A DNA stretch of 64,000 nucleotides from Ophelia neglecta (lineage: Eukaryota), in NCBI GenBank assembly GCA_965285935.1, contig OZ260661.1, forward strand, positions 101,680,001 to 101,744,000. The letters run 5' to 3'. Shown here piece by piece: positions 35,633 to 58,262 of this stretch. A program made the position numbers and the translations under genes. Under the pieces are notes generated by a model. It had not been told where the DNA came from. It did no database searches and saw nothing but the letters and a program-made list of their open reading frames with translations. The first letter of the stretch is position 1. Each line of letters opens with the position of its first letter.

Positions 35633-36473
35633 AGCTGATGTAACTAGAGACAAATTTAAACTTACACAATTTGGAGAAGTGATGGCTTTTGCCACCGACA
35701 TTCACATTTAAACATGGAACCAGAATGCCGTTTGGGATTTCACGTTATTGAATGGAAAATAAAAGTATTGTATGAAAAAATCTCAGATGGAGGCCGCCGT
35801 GCTTACCCCAGTTAGGTCCACTGGGCTATCGACAGGCATGCAACCTCCATGATAGGCCTAGCCACCTAAAGCAATGGTTTGGTTTAAGGAATAATCTAGG
35901 ACATCACGGTTGGATGGCATGGGGAACGTGAATTACCAAAAGCAAGTACAATGTATATTAAGCTCAAGTAAGGCCTAGTAGGCCCTAAGGAGTCACTCAT
36001 AGATATTCGGCATGTTTGGAGAAATAAAAAATTCGGCGCCAAACTTAAATATATTACTAAGACCCAAAGGTTCCGCTTAACCTCGTCTGGTTGGCAAAAA
36101 ATTTCTGGTAGGCCTATAGCAAAACTGCCAGCAGCAAAAGCGGCCAAACTCCGCCAATATAGCATGGATTAGGCCTACGGTAGTCTACCACCCGGGAACA
36201 TCAGTGTGTCATCCAAGGCATTGCTGCTTGTAATGCATAAACAGAAGTACTTAATTGTTGACCGTTGTCTGCCGGAGAGCACGTTAGTAACCTTGGAGAA
36301 GATCACACTGACGTCATTTCCTTTGGCATGGATTTTGAATGAAATTGGCTCCGTGATAGATCTAACATGCATAATTTGTGCAGGAATACAACTTTACAAT
36401 ATCATCATTGTATAGCTTTTTAATGTAGTATAGAGGAAACTTAATTGTCAGAAAGGCTGCTTTGTACGCAAGT

Positions 36474-39400
36474 ATGGCAGGAAGGAATAATAGACGAAAA
36501 CCGGTGACTGTCAGCCGCCGCAATGGCCTACTCCCGTCTCTATCTGAAGAACTGGCAGAAACTCCGTCGGAGAGTGAAGAATCTGAATCTCTCCTGTCAG
36601 AAATAGAATTGAAATTAGAAGACGAGCTAACAAATGACAAACTGAGAGAGTTGGAGTATATCTTTGAGGAGGCTGATGAAGATGGAGGTGGCGGTCTGGA
36701 CATGGACGAGTTCAGAAATGCAATGAGACAGGCGATGGGAGATCAACTGACCGATCATGAATTGGACCTCATGTTCATGAAAGTAGACACAAACTGTGAT
36801 GGTACGGTAGACTGGGATGAATACCTGTCATACATGCTGTTAGAGTACAGAGAAAAGGACCAAATGAATTTTGAAGCCAAGAGGAAACCCTTTCCCATAG
36901 ACCTAAAAAAGGTACCACATATGAATCGGTATCAGCGGCACAGCGACAATATTGTATGTCTAGCTCATCAACCAACTGTTATTAAGGCCACTGGATCTAA
37001 TATCCTATACAGAGCCATTGAAGACGAAAACGGAAAGTATATTTCTGTAAGTAAAGACGGCATCGTCAATTTCTGGTCTATGGATCTAAAACACCTAAAG
37101 TCGGGCAAGATTGGATCAATTAAAAAAGAAGATGAGAGCAAGAAAACCAGCGTTTGGGTAACTGCTCTCGTGTACATCTCAAACCTCAACATGCTTGCTG
37201 TTTCCACAACCTCGTGTGATGTCACCTTCTACGGCATCTATCCCAACATGATAATACCTTTAAGGAGCATCACTAAGTTGGAGATCTCGTTGACTTGTAT
37301 GGACTACTGGACAGACCCCACAAACTTAGCGCATTCTATTCTTATGATGGGTGACGCTAGAGGCAATGTATATGGCCTGGAATTTAACGCCTGCGCAATC
37401 GCCTGCTTCCTCAATCCTCCCAGAAACAAAAAATACAAGCAGCAGGTTCCAGTTAGCGAGGTGCTCTCTGGGACCCACTGTTGTGTTCAAGGTTATTTTC
37501 TGTCACACATACATGAAGACTTCGTTCTCAGAATCAAATGGCTGCCGGAAATGGATTGTTTTCTCTCGTGTTGTCGGGAAAGGACGTGTGCACTTTATTT
37601 CGGCGATCTAAATAAGAAGAAATCCGCTTACTTCAAAGTGCGGAAGGGAGTGTTTGCCTTCGATTACAGCAAGAAGCATAGCGTAATTGTTACTGGTGGA
37701 AAAGACACGGTTGTCCGGGTTTGGAATCCGTATGTCAACAGTAATCCTGTCATGATACTACAGGGCCACAAGTCTGCGGTGACAAACGTCCTAGTGAATG
37801 AACTCATGGAAAATATCATCAGCATTTCCGAAGACAAAGAAGTCAATATTTTTGATATGACAACGCAGGTTTGTATTCAGACAATTTACAGGAAATGGTT
37901 GGTACCATTAGGAACTAGGCCAATCTCGGCTGTTCTTTTTAACCAGCACAGACAGGCTCTGCTTATGGCAACTAACCAGCTAGCGTTGTTTGAGCATGGA
38001 GAGAGAGAGATGAACTCTAAGCAGCTGACATCGCACGCCGCAGGTGTAAATGTCATTCTGTATAGCAGCCTTTTCGACCAAGTTATCAGCGGAGGAGCGG
38101 ATTCTATGGTATGCGTATGGGACATCACAACAGGAAAAAAAGTCATACAATTCAGTGCCCATAGGCAAATCCATTTTGGGGAGGAGATTAATATTGCAGT
38201 CACCGCAATGAAACTCGACCCGACCAATAGGAGATTGGTTACCGGAGCCAGAGATGGAACTGTAAGAATCTGGAACTACAATAACGGGGCCTTGCTCAGG
38301 GAACTAGAAGTTTTTGATAAGTTTGAAGTGAGTGGAATCGTCTGGGACCGAGGTCGAATTCTCACAGCCGGGTGGAACAGAAGAATAGCCGTGTACTTCG
38401 ACAGCCAGGATGATGAAACCGTGGCCCAGTGGAAGTCTCGACACTACGAGGACATTTTATCGCTCACCTTTGTGACACCAAGTACTATAGCTTCCTCATC
38501 CTTTGACGGAGATATTCTCCTCTGGTCTTTAGAGACTGGTCATTTATTGAGTAGACTAAATGGGAACAAGGTAAAACCTCCAGATTCAGATTCACAAAAT
38601 CCTAGTGGGGATCAACCAGACACAAAGAAACCAGTTTTAAGATATTTTGTAGGTCAAAATGAAAAAGGACCCACCCGAATGGGTCAGAATCCTGCTGAAA
38701 AGGAACCATCTCTTGCTTCGCAGAGGCCTAGTCCTAGCGGAAATACAAAGTGTGACATAATAACAAGTGATGTTTCGGCAACTGCAGATTCGTCTCGTGA
38801 GGTTTCTACCGATCCATGCCAAGAGGAATGTGAAGCAAATCCCGTTCCTACGAGTTTCAGAGGCAACGCGAAACTGACAGAGGAAGAGAGGGAGAAAAGT
38901 ATGTCTGCTTTGGGAAAGGTTGTTCGTATGAAACGACGTGCAATGGCGGCAAGAGACCGTGGACTGAATATGGCACGACGATCAAAAGAGACTTCAGTCG
39001 ACAAGTTGTTGTTCCTGCAAACCCGGGGTACAGGCCGTGAGTCAGCTTGTCTGGTGGCGAGCGGGGCAGGAGGTTGGATCCGATTTTGGTCTGTCCATCC
39101 CGACGGAGGGATGTTAGGTGGGTTCTCTGCCACCCACTTGAAGGGTGATGCGGTCCTGGCAATGGCAACAGACGAGAATAACCAGTACCTTATTACTGGT
39201 GATACAAGTGGCTACATCAAAGTTTGGTATATTGCCGAATACTGTACTGAAGAAAAACCAGTTGTCAATGCTGCTTCAACGCCTGTGACAACAGGTGGAA
39301 AAATAAATGGAGTACCAAGCGATATCCACAAGCGCTTCTCATTTTTAAGAGACATAACCATTGCTCAAAGAAAATTGTGTCCTAGTCTAAAGGAGACGAG

Positions 39401-42148
39401 TGATAAAAATGTCAATGGACCCCCAGTATTAATAAACTCCTTCAGAGGCCATTTGCAGGCAATCACATGCTTAGAATACATCAATGGGAGAGACTATGTT
39501 GTTTCGTGCAGTTCAGACCGTTCAGTCAGACTTTGGTCAGTTTATGGACAATACATTGGCATATTTGGAGTGCCTTGGCAGCAACTGAGTGAAGACACTA
39601 CCAAAGGCAGCAAATTTTCCATGGCAAGTTTTGCATTATCGAGTGCGGATGGGGACAAAGTTGCGCAGAACATGATGAAGTTACCAAAACCGAGGAGCAG
39701 AGATGTTTCCAAACTACCCTCAGACGTGAGAAAGGTGGCATCGGCTACCACCTTGAGGGTGATGTACGGTGGCCTGCGACCGAATTGGAAACTGGCTAAG
39801 AACATCGTTCTGATTTGGATCCCGATGTTGAGACATAAAAGGAAAATGGATTTGAGGCAGTTCCTTAGCATGCGCGAGAAAAACGAAGAAAAAGAGACAG
39901 AAATAATGCCGTCTATCATGGATCTTAGTTTCGACCCCAAAAATATCCTCGGAAAGTCATTCAAATCCAACCGGAAGCACAAACCGTTACCCAAACTGCC
40001 TGAAGTCCGTATGTTCCAGTCTCAGGTAGGCCTAATAGTGAATGCTTTTTCCGTTCATTTATTCTATTGTTTAACGTTGTTGGCCTATTCAGTGAAAAAA
40101 AGCGCGAATTGGAGCACAGGGCCTTTTAAAACTGAAAATCTCCCATATAGAGTCACTATATACTATATAAAAATAACAAGGGAACAGACTCCTGCATTGG
40201 GCCCGACAGGCATCTCTCAGCTTAAAGCCCGATATTTTCAAAAATTCAACACAATCCTCAACTTTCACTGCACAAATCTGTCCTCAGGTAATAATACTTT
40301 CAATAAAACACAATAAATGTCCAGTCAAATCATATAATTTTTCTATACCAAGCCTCAAATGGAGCTATTTACCCCTATTTTGACAAGGACAACATCTACC
40401 GGGCACATCCACACATCCACCACTCACCAGTAAAATGCCCCTTCAGCTGCAGTTCCTTACGTTCCTTGCCCCTGGCTGTAGGCCCTGGCCCATAATCCTC
40501 TACTGCTTGGGGTTGTCATGCCCTAAATAGTTTCACATTTGCCAAAATGAGACAAAATCCTGACAAAATCGTCATATTGAGGTACTTTCAATTTGTTTAC
40601 ATTCGTCAGCATGCTGGATGTAACACCTGCTGTGATTGGCTAGCTAAATAAATCATTATTTTTCTGCCAATCACAGCAGGTGTTACATCCAGCATGCTGA
40701 CGAATGTAAACAAATTGAAAGTACCTCAATATGACGATTTTGTCAGGATTTTGTCTCATTTTGGCAAATGTGAAACTATTTAGGGCATGACAACCCCAAA
40801 TAGTGGAGGATAATGGGCCATGACTTAAAACCAGGAGCAAGGAACATATGGAACTGCAGCCGAAGGGGCTTTTTTCTGGTGAGTGGTGGATGTGCGGCCG
40901 GATGTGCCCGGTAGATGTTGTCCTTGTCAAAATAGGAGTATATAGCTGCATTTGAAGCTTGGTATAGAAAAATTATATGATTTGACTGGACATTTATTGT
41001 GTTTTATTGAAAGTATTATTACCTGAGGACAGATTTGTGCAGTGAAAGTTGAGGATTGTGCTGAATTTTTGAAAATATCGGGCTTTAAGCTGAGAAGCCT
41101 GTCGGACCCAATGCAGGAGTCTGTTCCCTTGTTATTTTTATATAGTATGTAGTGACTCTATATGGGATATTTTCAGTTTTAAAAGGCCCCGTGGTATAGG
41201 CGTATAACGAAATGCGAACAGTGAAGCAAAAGGCGTATCCTTATAATAGGCCTAAGTGAAGCCCTATGTGCATCGTTAAACGCGCATAACCAGATGGTGA
41301 AGCAAAGCACGTGCACCGTGTAGAGCGCGCATTGAGAATAAGGGCCCATTGAGAAGTGATGCGGGAAGGGCGACTAGATAAGGGACTGGAACGAAGCACA
41401 GTTGAAGGGCGCGCGGAATATTGTTAAATCACTGTAATTCTGGTACCTGTGGAGTGGCACTATTTATATGGGCAGAAGGGTCGTAGTATGGGTCGCGGTG
41501 GATGGGAGGCTCCTGAAGCGAAACATTTTAACCTTCAGGCTAAATATAAAGTCATCTGTAAACAGTGAAACATTCGTTACTTATAATTGTGACATTCCCA
41601 AAACTGCAAAATGTGACACATGATAGACGTCTAGGGGAATTTCGGTCCAAAATCATCTCGATGATGCAGAGAAAATGTTTGTATTTGAATAAGCGGGAAC
41701 ATGTTAATTCACCTGCGAGCCGTGAACGGAGTTGTGTCAAGCCAAATTTCAAGCGGTTTTTTATTATGGATATTTCCGGTTTCGAGTGAATACAGCAGTC
41801 ACTTATCCCTCAGATTCTTCACTTTCCTTTTTTATTCGTTTCTCCCGTCTGTAGGTAGACGCGTATTCTTCTTTACCGTGCCATGAGCTAGCCCCGACGG
41901 ACCAACCCTGCCCGACGCCACCGATCGTACGAGAAATGCGGGAGACACAGAAAGCTTTAGAGAGGCACAGGAAAATGCAATATGGTATGAACAAAGCTAA
42001 AAATTTTGCAAAACTATACAAAAACAGTCGGTCGAAAGGGGTGTTTCCAAATACACAGGCACTGTCAAGGAGTGGGGGAAGCAGCTTGTCCACAAGTAAT
42101 GCCAAATGTAAAGGAGCAACGGAAAGCATCAGTTTCATTCCCCGATGA
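36474..42148 (+). CDS. EFCAB8: EF-hand + WD40 repeat protein, EFCAB8/WDY/WDR49(CFAP337)-like, ~1281 aa; exons 36474-40025 and 41855-42148
   Basis: Two N-terminal EF hands (DEDGGGGLDMDE, DTNCDGTVDWDE) and many WD40 repeats (TGGKDTVVRVWN, SGGADSMVCVWD, TGARDGTVRIWN, GH...SCSSDRSVRLWS). The phase-0 donor CAG|gtaggc (40026) joins acceptor ctgtag|GTA (41855), giving QVDAYSSLPCHEL... in frame with ORF 41936-42148. AATAAA at ~42337. The exact paralog within the family is uncertain. Confidence 0.8.
40115..41193. mobile_element. Foldback / long-TIR non-autonomous DNA transposon (arms ~526 bp, 25-bp spacer) in the WD40 gene intron
   Basis: 40115-40640 is the reverse complement of 40666-41193. The inner ~130 bp match perfectly. 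Termini are CACAGGGCCTTTTAAAACTGAAAA...TTTTCAGTTTTAAAAGGCCCCGTG. No clear TSD. Confidence 0.85.
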
Positions 42149-47796: not shown

Positions 47797-48786
47797 TCAC
47801 TGCGTAGTGTCTTCTGTAGAATTGGCCACTGAGTTGAATTCCAGATTAAAGGCCCACTGACGGTGACGGGCAATACATTGAAGCCAGCAATGGAAATTGA
47901 GCTTCTGGTTTTCTGTAAACCAATTACTGCCATAAGCGGTTGCCACCAACATATGTACACCATGTTCATATTTGTTACCGCACCTTGCATAGTTTTCATA
48001 ACAGCGTCTTATGCAGTCGAAGATTCGGTCCCGTTCGATGTAAGGAGGCTTCTTCTGGAGAAACCTAGAAATCAGGCAAGCTAAACTGGCTATAGACTGG
48101 GGACTATATCCATATTCATATTCAGGGTCAAAAATGGCGTATTGTTGTTCCACAATGTGCTTCCGTTTATCCTCTAGCTCCTCTTTGGCCTTCTTCAGCT
48201 CTCGTTCTAGTTGTTTGTTACGGATGTCAGCGATATCCAAGTCCCGTTTAAGGCGCCTGACGTGTAGTTCTAGTGTAGAAACTCGGCTGACAAGTTCCTG
48301 CGGATGCGACTGGGACTTCCTGAGCAGGGCGAGCATGCGGTCTCGACTTCCTTTTTCGCCATCTTCTCCGACCGCTGCCGCGATTGCCTCGCAAGACAAA
48401 TGGTGCTCGGAAAGCGCCTGCCTGTTAAATGTTTGTAAGCAGCCAGTACATTCTACAGGTGCGAAAGGGCAGGTGTCGCTATGGGCTTTTATTTCTTCTA
48501 ATCGTGTGATTACTTTGCACCCCCGTGGTCCGTAGAGACAGCGAGTATCCATTGCATTTACCAAGTTTCGAATGGCGCGAACTGGTATAGCATCATCAGC
48601 GAATATTCTACCACGACATTCTGGACAGGAGAGACATCCTGGCTTAGAGAGCCATGTATGTAGGCAACTCTTACAAAATGAGTGCCCACAAGGGGTCAGA
48701 ACTGCATCCTCCAAAACTAGGCTACAAATACCGCACAATAAATTCTCATCTATTGAGCTCACGAATTTCTGCAACCCATATCCCAT
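47797..48786 (-). CDS. RING-HC E3 ubiquitin ligase with TRAF/SINA-type zinc finger and coiled coil (RNF41/RNF151/PDZRN-like N-terminus), 329 aa, single coding exon
   Basis: MGY...LLCGICSLVLEDAVLTPCGHSFCKSCLHTWL...CPECR is a C3HC4 RING. It is followed by C..GPRGC...H...CPFAPVECTGC...H...C zinc fingers, a heptad coiled coil and a ~110-aa C-terminal domain. Confidence 0.9.
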   Translation of the reverse strand: MGYGLQKFVSSIDENLLCGICSLVLEDAVLTPCGHSFCKSCLHTWLSKPGCLSCPECRGRIFADDAIPVRAIRNLVNAMDTRCLYGPRGCKVITRLEEIKAHSDTCPFAPVECTGCLQTFNRQALSEHHLSCEAIAAAVGEDGEKGSRDRMLALLRKSQSHPQELVSRVSTLELHVRRLKRDLDIADIRNKQLERELKKAKEELEDKRKHIVEQQYAIFDPEYEYGYSPQSIASLACLISRFLQKKPPYIERDRIFDCIRRCYENYARCGNKYEHGVHMLVATAYGSNWFTENQKLNFHCWLQCIARHRQWAFNLEFNSVANSTEDTTQ

Positions 48787-50792
48787 GATTCAACATCAGT
48801 GTAGCCTTATTCTGAAATCACTCCATCAATTACAGCTCTCCGCATCATTTCCTCGCTGTTTTCCGGTTTTCTCGGTTGAGCCGCGCTGGCCAACCGGATA
48901 TTAATATGAGCTGTAGCACGGAAAACGCACCAGGCCGCGGCACACAGGTAAATTCTCAGATACAACACCCCCAATAGCTCATTATGTGAGCTCGACTGAC
49001 ATTAATCACTATCGATGGTCTCCCTTGTAATATGTTGCACAAGGGATTACTACCGTAGTACGCAAGATACCAGGTGTTAGCAAAATGAAGAACCACCTAA
49101 TTATTTATAGTATTTATACGATTTCGGAAACGTGGTGGCCCTTCACAATATGCACCTATATGCAAGTACTCCACTCCATTAGGTTCAGGTAGCACTGCGC
49201 AGCGACATGCAATCAGAACAAATTAATGTATGCTTGGGATGAATTCGGACTCGGAGCAGCTCAGAGCTTCATCAATATTGTATTCAGTGCATCGCGCTGA
49301 CTATCCAGGTGAGGTCAGGCTGATGTTACTGTGGCGCATGCGTTCATTTACCTGTGTTTCTTTGACAAGATAGCCCCTTGGCGTTGGTTTGTCTTTAATC
49401 TACCCATTAACCTACTAGATTTGATCAATCTTTTTTTGGACCAAAACTTGCAGCCATTTAGCAGATATATATCAATATAAGCTTTTGGGCATACTTTTAT
49501 ATGTTTGCCATTTCCGTTAGGCGTGCTCTGTTTCTTTAGCCCAGGGTTACCATACACTAGACAATGGTCAGATGCCAAAAGCTTACTACACACAAATTGG
49601 CATTACACCCAATAGGCCTACAATACCCATTTTTCAACTGTTCAGTTGTGAATGACTTGCGTGCTAGATGGGCGATTCTCGTCCATTAATATATATGAGG
49701 ACTCCAGACCCCCCCCCCCCCCCCGACGTTTCACACGCAGGTTTATGATTTATTTGATGGTACCCTGGATTTCCAGATTATCATAACTTGCACGGTCGAC
49801 TTCACTGATTTTGAGGAAAGGGTTCCCACATGGACCAAACTAGTCCATGGCGTCGTTTATGTTTAGTTTATCGATTTCTATCTATAGAATAATGGCCTAG
49901 TCACTATCAGATCACCTATTGAAGCTTCACATTTTTCTCCCTCCCTGCAATGATTCCATGCGTGCCTGCCAGTTTTATGTACAAACGTCGATTGACCCTC
50001 TACATCAAAGTCCCCTGGGGGCCTTGGCTTCATCTCACCTCGTGCATTCCTTTAATTAGTACCCGTGCATGCTAAGCGCCAAGAACTCGAACTGAAAGCT
50101 GATGCTACAGGAGAGAAATGCAATATTACATGGACGAAAGTCATGTAAATTGTTGTTTAAAAATACCTCAAACATAAAGATTCTGAGGTCGTTGACCCAT
50201 CCGTATTTGTGAATTTTTATCAACGACAAGTCACTGAAATTCTATCCTATTCGTGGTAATAAATAACAAGAAAGTGTGATGGATGTCTAGCATTTTAATT
50301 TTTTTCTCTTTTTTTCATTTAATAATATAAAACTTATCGCCTGATTCCATTCTTTGGCAATACATCATATTTACATAGAGAACGATAAGAGACGTGCTTT
50401 GATTGAATAACATAATCAAGTTATTGTCTAACCCGCTACTTTTGCGTCTAAAGCTTAATCAAATAATTCGATACTGAATGAGTAATGCATGAATTAATAA
50501 CACGTACATTTTAACTCTCATTGCATTTATCATGATTTATTCCATTTACACTTTATCACGTCATCCATTTTGATAAAACTATCATAAATGAGCATGTATG
50601 ATGTACTATGAACTCCTGCAACAACATAATAAGGGGCGTCGCCAGGAAATAATGACCAACCAATTATACATACAAAATCGATCATTTTTGCAGAAAACAA
50701 TAAAAATAAAATTGCCCTCATGAAAGATGAAGATAAAGTACACGATGAATAAACACGATGCCATTATGGTTAATGTTAGGTCGTCTGCTAGT

Positions 50793-53414
50793 TCAGACCA
50801 TGGGGTCATCACCTGGAGATTCCTCTTCTGCGTCTAGCAGATCCTCTATTTCTATGCTGCTCTTGATTTTCCTACACAGTAATTCTGAGAGAGACTCTTC
50901 CGTTTGATTGTCTGAAATGTTATGAGTATGCCCGTGTCGGTGATAATTAGGAAACGTTGAGAACAAACATTAACAAAATGCTATAGGTAGTTATTGAAAT
51001 ATTTCTAACAACAAAAACCAATGATATATTATATTATACACTTTCAGAACATACACAGACCACTCGCATTTGTTTTCTAACTGTTATGTTAGAACATATG
51101 CGTTCGGTCGTGCAATTGTTCAATAGATCTACATGTTCTATAGATTATTTATTGTGTTCTACAAAGAACATGGGTGCTCACGCCTGCAGCGAACACCTGT
51201 GATCTCTGCAGAACAGTATAGGAGACTTATAGAACAGTGTTCCGATGCGATAGATTCTATCGGTGGTCTTAATAGATGTCTGAAGTGTTCTAAATGCATT
51301 CCACGGGATGAGAATGTAACCTTATTGACAATAAATATACAAAAAGAGAAACTGGTTACGATGAAGCTCACTGGCTGAAATGTAAAACTGGATAGAAATT
51401 TAAGGAGGGAACTCCAAGCTGCTTCAATCACTTGCACCTACCATCCCATATTATCAATTCACATCTGTCCCCAAACGGCGCGTGCTTTGGATGGCGGAGA
51501 ATATACATAAGGTAGTTTCGAAAAGAAAGCATTTCCTTCTCCTTCTTTTCTTCGTCAAAGTTTGCAACCATTTCATCACACATTTCGTACAATGCCATCA
51601 TGGGGGTCGCGAACTCACACATGCAGTAGTAAACCTGTAATAAAAGAACGGTTGAAAAAAATGAAACGACATTTTATAACTGTCTGGATGTTGTTTCTGA
51701 ACATAGCAGAAGATATTCAGTGCATGTACCTTGATCATACCTCATTGTGATTGCTCGGATTGGTGATTTTTTGAACTACGTGAGCGTAGTTCCTATTTTC
51801 ATTGCCGGCCCTGTTGGCTGAGAAATCTATTTTATCGTCGAACACGATATTCTGGTCTGCTAGTTTCATCTGTTGTGGACATCGACAAGACAAGGGTAGT
51901 ATGATGAATAGTTTGGCAATCATCTTCTTTTGCTTGTGCTGAGTGTGGTAGATCGAACTTTTCACTCTTGCTTTTAGACCTGACTCAAATCAGTTAATAA
52001 ACTTACGTACAGGCATTGTCACGAAAACATTGAAATATCAACAGGTGCTTTTTACTAGTTTAAATTCGCCCCGAGCATCAAATTAAGCATTTTAATGATA
52101 AAATAATTATATCAATTGAACTTTAAAAGTTTTTTACCGGGCAAAATAAGCTTCAGGTACCCATAAAAGTAGGACCAGGCAAGGCCGACGGACGCTTTAT
52201 CACATTCGATTTGCTTATTCTTCTTTTCTTGTTCTAGAAATGATATATAAAATGGTTTAGCTTGAACTGGTGCGAACATAAAAAGGGCGGTTCTTTGAGT
52301 TATTGAGTTCAACAGAGCCATGTGTTTGATAGTACGCCCTATAGATAGGAATTTTCTAAGGTTTAATGATTTAGTTAATTTAGAAAACTACTTGAGCTAA
52401 GAAATGGGCTCTACTCAACCAGTAGCTGCTTTTAACTGTTCCCAATGTTTCTTTTCCTCTGTCTCGTCACTACTGTCGTTAAACGGTAAATACGTTTGAT
52501 GGAAGGAAAGTCTCTCTAAAAACAGGTAATCTGCGGGGATGTCTTTTTTCTCCAAATTGTAAAAGACTGGAAACAATCTGGAATTCTTGCTGTGCATACA
52601 GACATAGTCCAACCAGGAAGTCTTAAGCACTGCCCTGAAATTGAGTGAGTTCAAATGAAATCAAGTCTTTAGTGTAATTATTTAGTTAAGATTTTGATAG
52701 GTTTGGGCAGCACCTATTCAAACACTTTTTTTAGTGTTCTAGGAAGGGTAGGGCCGATTGGTAAGGGGTTTGTCATTTACTATGGCTACGGGAAGGGAGC
52801 GCCTAAACCCTTGAGGGGGGGGGGGTCAACAGATTGTGACACCCTCCTATGAGAGTAGTATAAAACAAACCACCCATTAAAGTTGATAAATTATGAAGGA
52901 AAGTACGAAATTCGTTTGCATTCGCAAAAATCTTCATTAATTTTGCTTTCATGTAACATAGTTTGAACAGGATATTCTGAGATATTCTGCAATACCAAGG
53001 CAGGGCAGAATTAAGAGCAACCCCTTCCATGTTCCAAGAGCGAGCATATTCCACAAGTCAGAACGTTAAGTTCGGTATTTGCCCCGATAGGTCTACTCGT
53101 AATTCAAATTAGGCCTATATCATGTCTATAAGCATGCGATTGCCAGATGCTCTGATATCTTTACTTTTTCACTCGATGGTAAGGAACACTACTTGGTGGC
53201 TTACTTGCCTATTAACAATGATGATCAATTTATCCTTGTTGACAACTTCTTTCTGGAACGTTTTCAGTTGGTTTGGGGTGGGAGGGAGGCCTAGTAGTGA
53301 ACTACGTTTTTCCACATTTTCAAGCTTCGACGTCACCTTCTCAGCAAATCGTTTGTCACTGTCTTGGAAGTATACAACCAGTACACTTATGAGGCTTTGT
53401 TTTTCCGCGGACAT
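50793..53414 (-). CDS. STING1: TIR-STING: stimulator of interferon genes homolog with an N-terminal TIR-like domain, ~390 aa; exons 53414-53209, 52634-52420, 52338-52138, 51979-51741, 51634-51442, 50911-50793
   Basis: STING signatures: GLAWSYFYGYLKLILP, KLFIILPLSC, NRAGNENRNY, CMCEFATPMMALYEM, CELIIWD and SLSELL. All junctions are phase-compatible (total 1173 nt), with a GC-AG first coding intron. Exons 1-2 give a TIR-like pattern (SVLVVY..DKRFAEKV..KLE / KLIIIVN..SW / LFPVFY..DIP / HWEQLKAA). An acceptor (ttttaccag) 4 nt before the ATG implies an upstream exon. Confidence 0.88.
51038..51288. mobile_element. Old diverged MITE-like inverted-repeat element in the last STING intron
   Basis: acactttcagaacat...agaccac is an imperfect inverse of gtggtct...atgtctgaagtgt. 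The motif tgttcta/tagaaca recurs internally. Confidence 0.35.
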
Positions 53415-54185
53415 TGTCCTGGTAAAATTAAGAAAACATTATTTGAGACGATTTAACTTTTAGGAGAAGCATTAAGCGTCGTAATCCTAAATCAAGCTTT
53501 ATTATTAGCAAACAATTTTGCAGCCGAAATCAGAGGGACCGCGAGCAAATATCGCTTATGATCGTCAGGGGCGTTCCCAACTTCCCACAAGGGGGGGTTC
53601 ACTTCAGCGCGACATGAAATGGACCAACACAGGTTTTTCTGGTGGTGGTTCGTAGATTTTGCGATTCGAACTATAGAACAATTTTTTTTTGACAACTCAA
53701 GTTAAGTCAGCTGACAAAGGGGGTTCGGACGAACCTCCCGACCCCCCCCCCCCCCCTAGTGACGCCCTTTATCGCCCTTTATCGTGAAACCTTATGAGGC
53801 TTTGTTTTTCCGCGGACATTGTCCTGGTAAAATTAAGAAAACATTATTTGAGACGATTTAACTTTTAGGAGAAGCATTAAGCGTCGTAATCCTAAATCAA
53901 GCTTTATTATTAGCAAACAATTTTGCAGCCGAAATCAGAGGGACCGCGAGCAAATATCGCTTATGATCGTCAGGGGCGTTCCCAACTTCCCACAAGGGGG
54001 GGTTCACTTCAGCGCGACATGAAATGGACCAACACAGGTTTTTCTGGTGGTGGTTCGTAGATTTTGCGATTCGAACTATAGAACAATTTTTTTTTGACAA
54101 CTCAAGTTAAGTCAGCTGACAAAGGGGGTTCGGACGAACCTCCCGACCCCCCCCCCCCCTAGTGACGCCCTTTATCGTGAAACCT
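53386..54185. repeat. ~400-bp near-perfect tandem direct duplication (53386-53790 / 53791-54185)
   Basis: The sequence cttatgaggctttgtttttccgcgg...cgccctttatcgtgaaac recurs at offset 405. The copies differ in a C-run length and an extra cgccctttat. This explains the twin ORFs at 53492 and 53897. Confidence 0.92.
53566..53769. mobile_element. Small MITE-like remnant (aggggcgt...acgccctt), present in both copies of the duplication
   Basis: Short imperfect inverted termini with a subterminal ggttcggacgaacc hairpin and a poly-C run. Confidence 0.4.
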
Positions 54186-55426: not shown

Positions 55427-55959
55427 GTATTATCCTTGCAATTATTAGGCTAGGAACAACTATAACTGTCTTACAACTTCTAATACCCTGGATACCTTCT
55501 GCATCGGACTAAGCCAAACGGCATGAATTCGTGAATACGGAAAACATCTTCCTGGTTCGGCGGGGGTTAAACACATGCACGGCAATGAACAACCTTCACC
55601 TTTATAGCTACATGGTAGCTACATGGTGGTTATTCGCCTTCACCGCGGTGGTTTAATAGAACTGTAGGTCGACTTCAGGCCTGGGTCGACTTGTAATGAC
55701 TAGATCAGTAAGTTACATTCCTACCAACAGTAGCAAGCACCTGGCAATAGCAGGATACCTGGTATGTGGCATAGGGCAGTATGTGGGTCGTCACGGGGTG
55801 AGGGGTGTATCAGTAAAATTGCGAGGTGGTATATTATATGAAGGAGCTATAAGGAAGGTGTCACCGGTCACATTTTAGACTCTCCTAGGCCAGTAACCTT
55901 TGCATGTGTGTGTTGTTTGTTGAATTGACAGCAAGGACGAATAGAAAACAATTAAGGTT

Positions 55960-56660
55960 TATAAAGACTACCAGTCCTATTAGAAAAGTCCTATATTGTG
56001 GACTCGGAGATGGGTTTAGAAACCAAACACAATTAAAAATTGAAATTACAAGGCTGATCAGAAATACAAATTTTTCTCGGTTGCTGACCATTTTACCCAA
56101 CTTTCGAAATAAACCCTTGCTTGCCACAATGAAAACGATGTATTATTCTCTCATGCAACCCCAATTACTATATGGACTCTTCAAATTTGACACTTGCTGC
56201 GTCAAATAATAGCAATAGGTTATTTTAACTTCAAACGAACTTTTAAGGGTAATTAACGTTACAAAGTCACACTTCGAGGCTCATATTATCCCCCATTTAA
56301 ACAGTTGAATATAGGGTATTAAAACATAAAGATTTGTTTCCTTAATATGGCCTTAATATGTAAAATGAATTAACTGATAAAACTGCTCCACCTCCTCTTG
56401 CTCAAATGGTATTTTTCAATTATGCTACCCGTAGAACTAAACTTAAACTAAAAAGTAACACTAAAACTACAATACCAGAAATCACTGATTGAAACATTTG
56501 GGACCAGTGAAAACAAACTTGTGTAAACAATCATTGACCATATCTATAAACAGAGTGAAGGAGCTGGGTTTGATTAATATCTTGCCATACTCGATTAATT
56601 TTAAGGTGACAAAAATGGACTTTATTTCTAAATATGAGGTGTCTTTCAATTCCCGAGGTT
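55960..56660 (+). mobile_element. Decayed non-LTR retrotransposon (LINE) RT C-terminal fragment
   Basis: Translations LATMKTMYYSLMQPQLLYG and SHFEAH..P.FKQLN resemble the LINE ORF2 motifs TLKTLYYSLIHPHL.YG and AHT.PLFK.L. Interrupted by stops and frameshifts. Confidence 0.55.
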
Positions 56661-57409: not shown

Positions 57410-58262
57410 TTATCTTTGCCCCCATAGGGGGGCAAAGATTATGTTTTTTGTCATGTGCGTCAGTGTGTCCGTCTGTCTGTCTGTGTGTCTGTGCATCTGT
57501 CTGCAAGATATCTCAAGAATCACTTGGCCGATTTCGATGAAATTTGGTGAGAACCTAGAATAGGACAATGGCTCGAGGCCATTAACTTTTGGTTGACCAA
57601 CTTCTAAAAATTAGGTCACACCGTGACCTTGAAAATTTCAAATGGCTATATCTCAGCTGTTTAATGACCGATTTCCGCAAAATTTGGCACGAATGAAGCC
57701 AGTGAGAAAGTCTTCTAACTAAATTATCTAATTGACCTACTCTCAAAATCAAGGTCAAACCGTGACATTGAAAATTTCAAATGGCAATATCTCAGCCGTT
57801 TACTGACCGATTTCCGCAAAATTTGGCACGAATGTAGCCAGTGAGAAAGTCTTTTAATCAAAATTATCTAATCGACCTACTTTCAAAATCAAGGTCAAAC
57901 CGTGACATTGAAAATTTTAAATGGCTATATCTCAGCTGTTTAATGACTGATTTCCACAAAATTTGGCACGGATGTAGCCAGTTAGAAAGTCTTCTGACCA
58001 AAATTATCTAATTGACCTACTTTAAAAATCAAGGTCAAACTGTGACATTGAAAATTTCAAATGGATATATCTCAGCCGTTTACTTACCGATTTTTGTAAA
58101 ATTTTGCATGCATGTAGCCAGTTAGAAGCTCTTGATCGAAATACTTTAGTCATCTAGATTATTTGCTTATTTTTGCTGATCTATATTTTGCAGAATTTTT
58201 ATTACGATTGAGAAACTATCAAAGGGCAAAGATATCGTAGCCGATAGGATACACCTTTAATT
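57410..58262 (+). mobile_element. Helentron-associated non-autonomous element (HINE/DINE-1/pearl-like) with ~4 internal 140-bp tandem repeats
   Basis: 5' subTIR atctttgccc (57412) with an adjacent inverted copy (57430), then a (GTCT)n-like microsatellite. Tandem cores start at 57631, 57770, 57910 and 58050. The 3' subTIR gggcaaagat (58224) is followed by a short hairpin tatcg-tagc-cgata. Flanks are T-rich. Confidence 0.8.

Follow-up and report, generated by a model that had tools for sequence, protein, structure and literature searches.

TIR-STING fusions, in which a TIR domain is joined to a STING ligand-binding domain (LBD), have been described in both bacteria and animals. In bacteria, where the order of the domains is TIR then STING, they belong to the cyclic oligonucleotide-based antiphage signalling system (CBASS), and the fusion found in oyster has been cited as support for a bacterial origin (PMC8204762). 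On the animal side, five annotated proteins of the oyster Crassostrea gigas carry a TIR domain in place of the transmembrane (TM) domain, alongside three double-unit proteins, and abalone TIR-STING proteins of 359 amino acids (aa; Haliotis rufescens) and 379 aa (H. discus hannai) were reported in the same work (PMC11103948). Oyster and Capitella teleta were also named as TIR-STING carriers (PMC6723221), and a depletion of nicotinamide adenine dinucleotide (NAD+) by the oyster TIR-STING was suggested (bioRxiv 10.64898/2026.04.20.719644). Such fusions connect the bacterial CBASS effectors with animal STING, and their signalling output in animals is poorly understood. The present analysis concerns a stretch of 64,000 nucleotides (nt) of the Ophelia neglecta genome (GenBank assembly GCA_965285935.1, contig OZ260661.1, positions 101,680,001 to 101,744,000), called the window below, and more precisely a gene on its minus strand (50793-53414), which an earlier note had read from the letters alone as a soluble TIR-STING fusion. 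The background given in that note, namely that these fusions occur in bacterial CBASS, in oyster and in an annelid, agrees with three of the papers just cited (PMC8204762, PMC11103948, PMC6723221).

We estimate at roughly 70% the probability that the six exons of this locus make up an intact gene whose product is a cytosolic protein of 355 aa, in which a diverged TIR-derived domain is joined to a canonical metazoan STING LBD, that this gene is one of four paralogs, and that it works through the mechanism proposed below. Its predicted layout comprises a TIR-like domain at about residues 9-140, a short connector, the LBD at about residues 150-335 and a short acidic tail. The predicted spliced model and the architecture of the paralogs together point to a TIR-STING fusion made as one membrane-free polypeptide. 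Single-unit TIR-STING proteins have been published from oyster, abalone and Capitella, and the architecture is known from brachiopods as well, so that the window gene would be a further member of a known animal kind.

As the earlier note had proposed, six phase-compatible exons on the minus strand join in frame with the ends it had claimed; under the predicted splicing, a local frame check gives a single open frame of 1068 nt, that is 355 aa and a stop, and not the product of about 390 aa that had been announced. Exon 1 (53209..53414, 206 nt) opens with the ATG at 53414-53412, ends in phase 2 and provides residues 1-68 as well as two of the bases of codon 69; it corresponds to the first half of the TIR-like domain, in register with the first-half TIR exons of the paralogs. 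Exon 2 (52420..52634, 215 nt; entered in phase 2 and left in phase 1) corresponds to the second half, with W76..V80 at the position of the W-C-x-x-E motif and with the betaD motif LFPVFYNL..DIP. The connector and the first LBD helix, including S161, Y162 and Y166, are encoded by exon 3 (52138..52233, 96 nt), and the core and lid of the LBD, including R229, R235 and Y237, by exon 4 (51741..51979, 239 nt). Exon 5 (51442..51634, 193 nt), whose acceptor and donor positions are common to the paralogs, continues the LBD with E259 and T262, and exon 6 (50793..50911, 119 nt, of which the last three are the TGA stop, 50795-50793) provides the last LBD helix and the short acidic tail. On the same strand, an AATAAA at 50536..50541, 252 nt past the stop, is a possible polyadenylation signal, as a pattern match only. 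Four of the five predicted introns are of the GT-AG class and one, intron 1, is of the GC-AG class: the frame across it is kept only by the GC donor at 53207..53208 on the minus strand, which has the classic surroundings of such a donor (AG/GCAAGT), the neighbouring GT leading to the wrong phase. The Kyte-Doolittle mean over 19 residues peaks at 1.19 in the 355-aa model and therefore no membrane helix is predicted, in line with the absence of a four-pass TM bundle claimed from the letters. This joined model was used in local scripts (frame check, hydropathy, BLAST, hidden Markov model (HMM) and hhalign runs against sequences already fetched), whereas the exons were submitted one by one to the Pfam, PDB, homology, structure-prediction and ESM Atlas runs.

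The STING part of the protein is identified by its matches to the Pfam STING_LBD profile (PF15009; profile length 182, curated cut-off 27 bits). Exon 3 covers profile positions 4-20 (26.7 bits, E 4e-6), exon 4 positions 29-95 (41 bits, E 1.7e-10) and exon 5 positions 99-158 (37.2 bits, E 2.5e-9), and these matches are colinear along the profile and far past chance, so that the STING ligand-binding domain read from the letters was recovered by a HMMER-type search in three exons. Exon 6 had no match by itself in the Pfam scan; it holds a helix-like stretch similar to the C-termini of related proteins and, after it, the acidic tail. In PDB sequence searches, exons 3-5 matched solved STING chains by the dozen, and the ligand pocket was mapped by coordinate arithmetic on the ungapped alignments obtained. 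Residues 14-31 of exon 3 align without gaps to human STING 156-173, which gives the equivalents of S162, Y163 and Y167; the stretch N-R-A-G-N-E-N-R-N-Y of exon 4 faces the human D-R-A-G-I-K-D-R-V-Y, which gives those of R232, R238 and Y240; and residues 4-48 of exon 5 align to construct positions 104-148, from which the offset of the exon-3 alignment leads to E260 and T263. All eight ligand-contact positions (S162, Y163, Y167, R232, R238, Y240, E260 and T263, corresponding to S161, Y162, Y166, R229, R235, Y237, E259 and T262 in the numbering of the model) are identical to human STING. The equivalents of Y163/Y167, R232/R238/Y240 and E260/T263 that the earlier note had picked out are thus kept and, as judged from these alignments, the ligand pocket of animal STING is fully retained in the window gene.

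This retention bears on whether the locus has any present function. One could consider it as a silent or decaying paralog, given its degenerate TIR and a start region disrupted by a 405-bp tandem duplication with 99% identity between its copies. Such decay is however extremely improbable: the six exons are open, the splice sites are all usable and the eight checked ligand-contact residues are kept, which, in view of a paralog identity of about 30-55% in short segments, argues for continued selection.

A representative search with exon 4 in a 50%-identity library gave 21 matches at 33-51% identity, or at most 44% where most of the query aligns. One of them is a Lamellibrachia STING fragment, and several are metatranscriptome proteins with two LBDs each, preceded by alpha/beta domains that are negative in Pfam. 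The only named match with a Pfam TIR beside STING is the Lingula anatina protein XP_013404162.1, of 704 aa and organised as TIR-STING-TIR-STING. Searches made with the TIR-STING unit of this protein returned no match for the cut-out piece, and only the protein itself when the unit was taken as a region of the full protein.

As regards the N-terminal domain, the argument is carried by the comparison with the other STING genes of the same genome. A search of the 762-Mb assembly with the Pfam STING_LBD profile returned, beyond the window gene (on C1), matches on C9 at 39.9 Mb and at 50.1 Mb, on C12 at 39.7 Mb and a weak one on C14. The first three correspond to the paralog regions C9:39903000-39912999, C9:50108500-50118499 and C12:39660000-39669999, and they surfaced with the Pfam profile only: protein searches of the own genome with exon 2 or exon 4 returned only the window locus. 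In all three paralogs, the LBD exons are immediately preceded by a pair of TIR-like exons. In the C9:39.9 Mb gene, the first exon of this pair matches positions 1-60 of Pfam TIR_2 with 40.4 bits, and its counterpart in the C12 gene reaches 22.9 bits on the same profile. In the four genes, intron 1 is a phase-2 intron placed after the same betaC strand, and their first TIR exons end with LIIIVN-R (window gene), VMLIT-P (C9:39.9 Mb), IMLIS-R (C12:39.7 Mb) and LMIVS-K (C9:50.1 Mb); exon 1 of the window gene is in register with the exons that encode the first TIR half in its paralogs. These three paralogs carry a GT donor at exactly the codon position and phase of the GC donor of the window gene, which explains the latter. 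Intron 2 is in phase 1 in three of the four genes and absent from the C9:50.1 Mb gene, where one continuous open reading frame (ORF) runs from the second TIR half into the beginning of the LBD; as for introns 3-5, within the LBD, their donor and acceptor positions are mostly common to the four genes. All this holds for paralogs that are about 30-55% identical, in few short alignable segments. Because these paralogous TIR-STING genes share their intron positions and phases, one of them with a TIR exon certified by Pfam, it is very probable that the N-terminal domain of the window gene (about residues 9-140) is TIR-derived and strongly diverged. Besides, the faint STING_LBD match on C14 (18 bits, E 0.59) falls in an intronless 179-aa ORF at about 106 kb on the minus strand, with a G-A-S-L-A-V-S-Y-F..L-I-L-P motif, which may represent a fifth, very diverged STING-like gene.

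The direct signals for a TIR in the sequence are weak, each single test being weak, yet all of them are in register. An HMM built locally from five TIR domains matches the N-terminus with 11.2 bits, colinearly over residues 15-104, a score equalled by 2 of 3000 shuffles (empirical p about 0.001). In Smith-Waterman comparisons, the N-terminus reaches z = 5 with the second of the two Lingula TIRs; with the first one, and with the N-terminal and middle parts of two metatranscriptome proteins (P0004 and P0022), no significant similarity was seen. In terms of structure, AlphaFold2 run on exon 1 alone (five aligned rows) predicts, with a predicted local distance difference test score (pLDDT) of 72, a strand at 9-15, a helix at 18-35, a strand at 38-42, a helix at 47-57 and a strand at 61-67, and this modelled beta-alpha-beta-alpha-beta succession is the pattern expected of the first half of a TIR. 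In the same line, a shape search of the ESM Atlas with the exon-1 half-model ranked a TIR_2 fragment cluster first (template modelling score 0.65), and TIR_2/SEFIR rows at 0.82 came out of the exon-1 language-model features, a result to be taken only as a lead. For exon 2, the language-model features yielded no usable row in the ESM Atlas, and a word search returned no candidate.

Several results speak against the interpretation given here, most of them with regard to the N-terminal domain. When scanned separately, exons 1 and 2 match no Pfam family up to E = 10, and neither the TIR (PF01582) nor the TIR_2 (PF13676) model is found in one or the other exon. The PDB sequence searches with these two exons gave only rows at chance level (YoeB, syntaxin, PCNA and the SWIRM domain of SMARCC1), which were discarded. 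The hhalign comparisons are weak, with P values of 0.008 for exon 1, 0.024 for exon 2 and 0.012 over 87 columns for the joined N-terminus. Exon 2 alone is predicted poorly by AlphaFold2 (pLDDT 60), Foldseek and VIA-align runs with the exon-1 half-model against the PDB found generic alpha/beta folds only, and other alpha/beta families nearly equal the TIR_2 score in the ESM Atlas shape search. In addition, the window protein itself was not returned by the representative search with exon 4. Finally, as to the start of the gene, a polypyrimidine-AG acceptor-like site lies immediately 5' of the ATG, and an ORF of 80 codons on the minus strand (55885-56127), located 2.5 kb upstream, has a frame that would permit a junction with this site. 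The TIR-like N-terminus of the earlier note is therefore to be taken in a restricted sense: searched one exon at a time, it has no sequence match in Pfam or the PDB, and is supported by the exon plan of the paralogs and by weak colinear profile matches. Likewise, the combination of AlphaFold and Foldseek, run on single exons against the PDB, recovered the beta-alpha-beta-alpha-beta pattern in exon 1 but no TIR-specific neighbour.

The points relating to the gene start lead to the question of a gene-model artefact, according to which the locus would encode separate TIR-only and LBD-only products, the latter from an ATG at 52321, or else one longer protein, anchored in the membrane through an additional exon upstream. 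In favour of two products, read-through at the exon-2 donor meets a stop after two codons, and the ATG at 52321 opens an ORF (52112-52321, minus strand) that runs through the intron-2 acceptor and is continuous with exon 3, so that, judging by the reading frames, an isoform made of the LBD and devoid of the TIR-like domain is possible. The short hydrophobic run in this stretch falls far below the length of a membrane helix. However, exon 2 and this internal ATG are just about 100 bp apart, and the succession of TIR exons then LBD exons, with its phases, is found in all the paralogs, one of which has the junction inside a single ORF. As for a membrane-anchoring exon, the ORF at 55885-56127 contains two hydrophobic stretches and an AG/GT site near its end, and is frame-compatible with the acceptor-like site preceding the ATG. 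Against this, it has no match in a Pfam scan, and its sole other copy in the genome (C9:13.84 Mb), 72% identical, carries frame-breaking indels and extends its similarity past the ends of the ORF. Its use as a TM exon was accordingly judged unlikely and the ORF is probably non-coding. Moreover, the genome has no match to STING_TM (Pfam PF23417) over the cut-off, the best one (20.6 bits) containing stops. Considering both sides, an artefact of either type is quite unlikely. The acceptor-like site is also carried by the 405-bp tandem duplication (53386..54177, 2.0 copies, 99% identical), which takes in upstream sequence, the start codon and the coding sequence up to its 29th nt; its upstream copy ends with ...ATAAG/GT and could in principle yield an in-frame mini-exon of 33 nt or a short upstream ORF.

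If the intact TIR-STING gene is retained as the preferred interpretation, the state of its TIR-like domain determines what the protein could do. At the W-C-x-x-E position, the window gene reads W76-L-D-Y-V80, which places Val80 at the catalytic Glu in the intron-anchored alignment, a placement at which an HMM alignment arrives independently. The residue found there is E in the C9:39.9 Mb paralog, A in the C12:39.7 Mb paralog, Q in the C9:50.1 Mb paralog, E in the first TIR of the Lingula protein and T in the second. The BB loop, between the predicted strand 38-42 and helix 47-57, amounts to about four residues (P-P-T-P), without a counterpart to the R-D-x-x-P-G type seen in the C9:39.9 Mb paralog (D-R-D-S-I-P-G-H). 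Among the three paralogs, only the latter keeps the catalytic Glu, the D-R-D-S-I-P-G BB loop and the canonical ligand pocket, the C12:39.7 Mb and C9:50.1 Mb genes being altered at the R232-equivalent position. The TIR of the window gene is the most degenerate of the four. It was reported that the activity of animal TIR domains is abolished whenever the catalytic Glu is mutated (bioRxiv 10.64898/2026.04.20.719644). With a Val at this position and a BB loop of four residues, NADase signalling is therefore unlikely: cleavage of NAD+ by the window protein is not expected from its sequence, and an adaptor-type contact between TIR domains is uncertain.

These observations weigh directly on the idea that the window protein works as an enzyme like the bacterial CBASS effector, in which binding of the ligand drives filament formation and then NAD+ hydrolysis by the TIR. 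The order of the two domains as in the bacterial TIR-STING (PMC8204762), the NAD+ depletion suggested for the oyster TIR-STING (bioRxiv 10.64898/2026.04.20.719644) and the Glu kept in the C9:39.9 Mb paralog would all be compatible with it. Nevertheless, Val80 occupies the catalytic position in two concordant alignments, mutation of this Glu always abolished activity in the above-mentioned study (bioRxiv 10.64898/2026.04.20.719644) and the BB loop is cut down to about four residues, which makes enzymatic output of this particular protein very unlikely. The cytosolic cyclic-dinucleotide receptor signalling through TIR that had been proposed thus stands in its first part, a soluble receptor of the TIR-STING type with a canonical LBD, an intact pocket, no TM segment and the exon plan of its paralogs; TIR signalling is weakened by Val80, the short BB loop and the absence of a Pfam TIR.

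The main alternative to a non-enzymatic assembly role is a decoy role. The window protein would then be a ligand sponge, whose pocket captures cyclic dinucleotides, or a dominant-negative partner, whose LBD co-assembles with active paralogs, its dead TIR damping the signal in both cases. The combination of a fully conserved pocket with the most degenerate TIR of the four paralogs (no Pfam match, no Glu, a short BB loop) speaks in favour of such a role. The Glu is however also missing from two further paralogs, which means that loss of catalysis is common in this family and need not signal a decoy. A damping function of this kind is thus conceivable, although on the whole improbable.

For the window gene, we infer the splicing from the joined frame, and the ligand, the oligomerisation and the output would be as follows. 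Under the favoured mechanism of a non-enzymatic assembly, the LBD dimer would bind a cyclic dinucleotide, probably 2'3'-linked, since the pocket residues match those of animal STING. This ligand could be produced by one of the many Mab-21/cGAS-like receptor (cGLR)-type enzymes encoded by the genome. Closure of the LBD and oligomerisation, both driven by the ligand, would then juxtapose the TIR-like domains. With Val in place of the catalytic Glu and hardly any BB loop left, the output would most likely be non-enzymatic, in the form of an assembly or adaptor surface, possibly within mixed oligomers with the Glu-bearing C9 paralog. With respect to the Mab-21 family, at least 79 Pfam matches over the cut-off were counted in the genome, many of them in open frames of 500-1100 aa and clustered, for instance on C12 at 5.6-6.1 Mb, on C8 at 17.14-17.18 Mb and on C7 at 2.7-6.8 Mb, which suggests a large expansion of the cGLR type.

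At a wider scale, one may tentatively imagine an animal devoid of membrane STING, whose cyclic-dinucleotide immunity would run through four soluble TIR-STING genes, one of them catalytic, with the window gene as a decoy or an obligate hetero-oligomer partner tuning the response to an expanded cGLR repertoire; this picture as a whole is speculative and rather unlikely to hold. If it is true that the genome lacks membrane STING yet holds at least 79 Mab-21-type matches, this species would be a useful animal for the study of cGLR-STING biology. The locus in any case contributes a family whose four genes are cleanly modelled and built on one common exon plan. It also offers a natural comparison between a paralog with both the Glu and a normal BB loop and the window gene, which has neither and whose pocket is fully conserved. 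Such a pair would allow testing whether the output of animal TIR-STING requires NADase chemistry.

Apart from the STING gene, a few other elements of the window deserve mention. Located 2 kb downstream of it, a 329-aa intronless ORF on the minus strand (47797-48786) carries an N-terminal C3HC4 RING finger (Pfam E 3e-9). On the plus strand, an unbroken ORF of 1284 aa (36462-40316), in the most GC-rich part of the window, combines an EF-hand pair with many WD40 repeats. Finally, a 140-bp tandem repeat (2.9 copies, 90% identical) occupies positions 57593-57995.

Compared with the described systems, the window protein comes close to several of them without coinciding with any. In a local BLAST, its residues 14-298 are colinear with the second TIR-STING unit of the Lingula protein XP_013404162.1 at 29% identity. 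The latter is however a double unit, both of whose TIRs pass Pfam TIR_2 and whose first TIR keeps the Glu of W-C-x-x-E, whereas the window protein is a single unit. According to published descriptions, the single-unit TIR-STING proteins of molluscs are similar in having a TIR in place of the TM domain, one STING LBD and about 360 aa; the window gene departs from them by a TIR part that lies beyond the reach of Pfam and in which the catalytic Glu is missing and the BB loop very short. With the bacterial CBASS TIR-STING, exemplified by Sphingobacterium faecium STING, it shares the TIR-then-STING order and a soluble nature, and ligand-driven oligomerisation is likely a common logic (PMC8204762). 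Unlike this bacterial counterpart, the exons of the window gene match metazoan STING_LBD and not prok_STING, the catalytic Glu is missing, the pocket has the animal-type Arg232/Arg238 residues, and the gene bears introns and sits on an animal chromosome. Canonical metazoan STING, such as human STING1 and Nematostella STING, resembles the window protein in terms of LBD sequence, dimer helix motif and ligand-contact residues; it differs by its four-helix membrane domain, which the window protein lacks, and by its C-terminus, which is here reduced to a short acidic tail. The known picture is therefore unchanged: the window gene does not define a new system, but is an ordinary member, and a useful example, of the known animal TIR-STING family, in which its TIR stands out as unusually degenerate.

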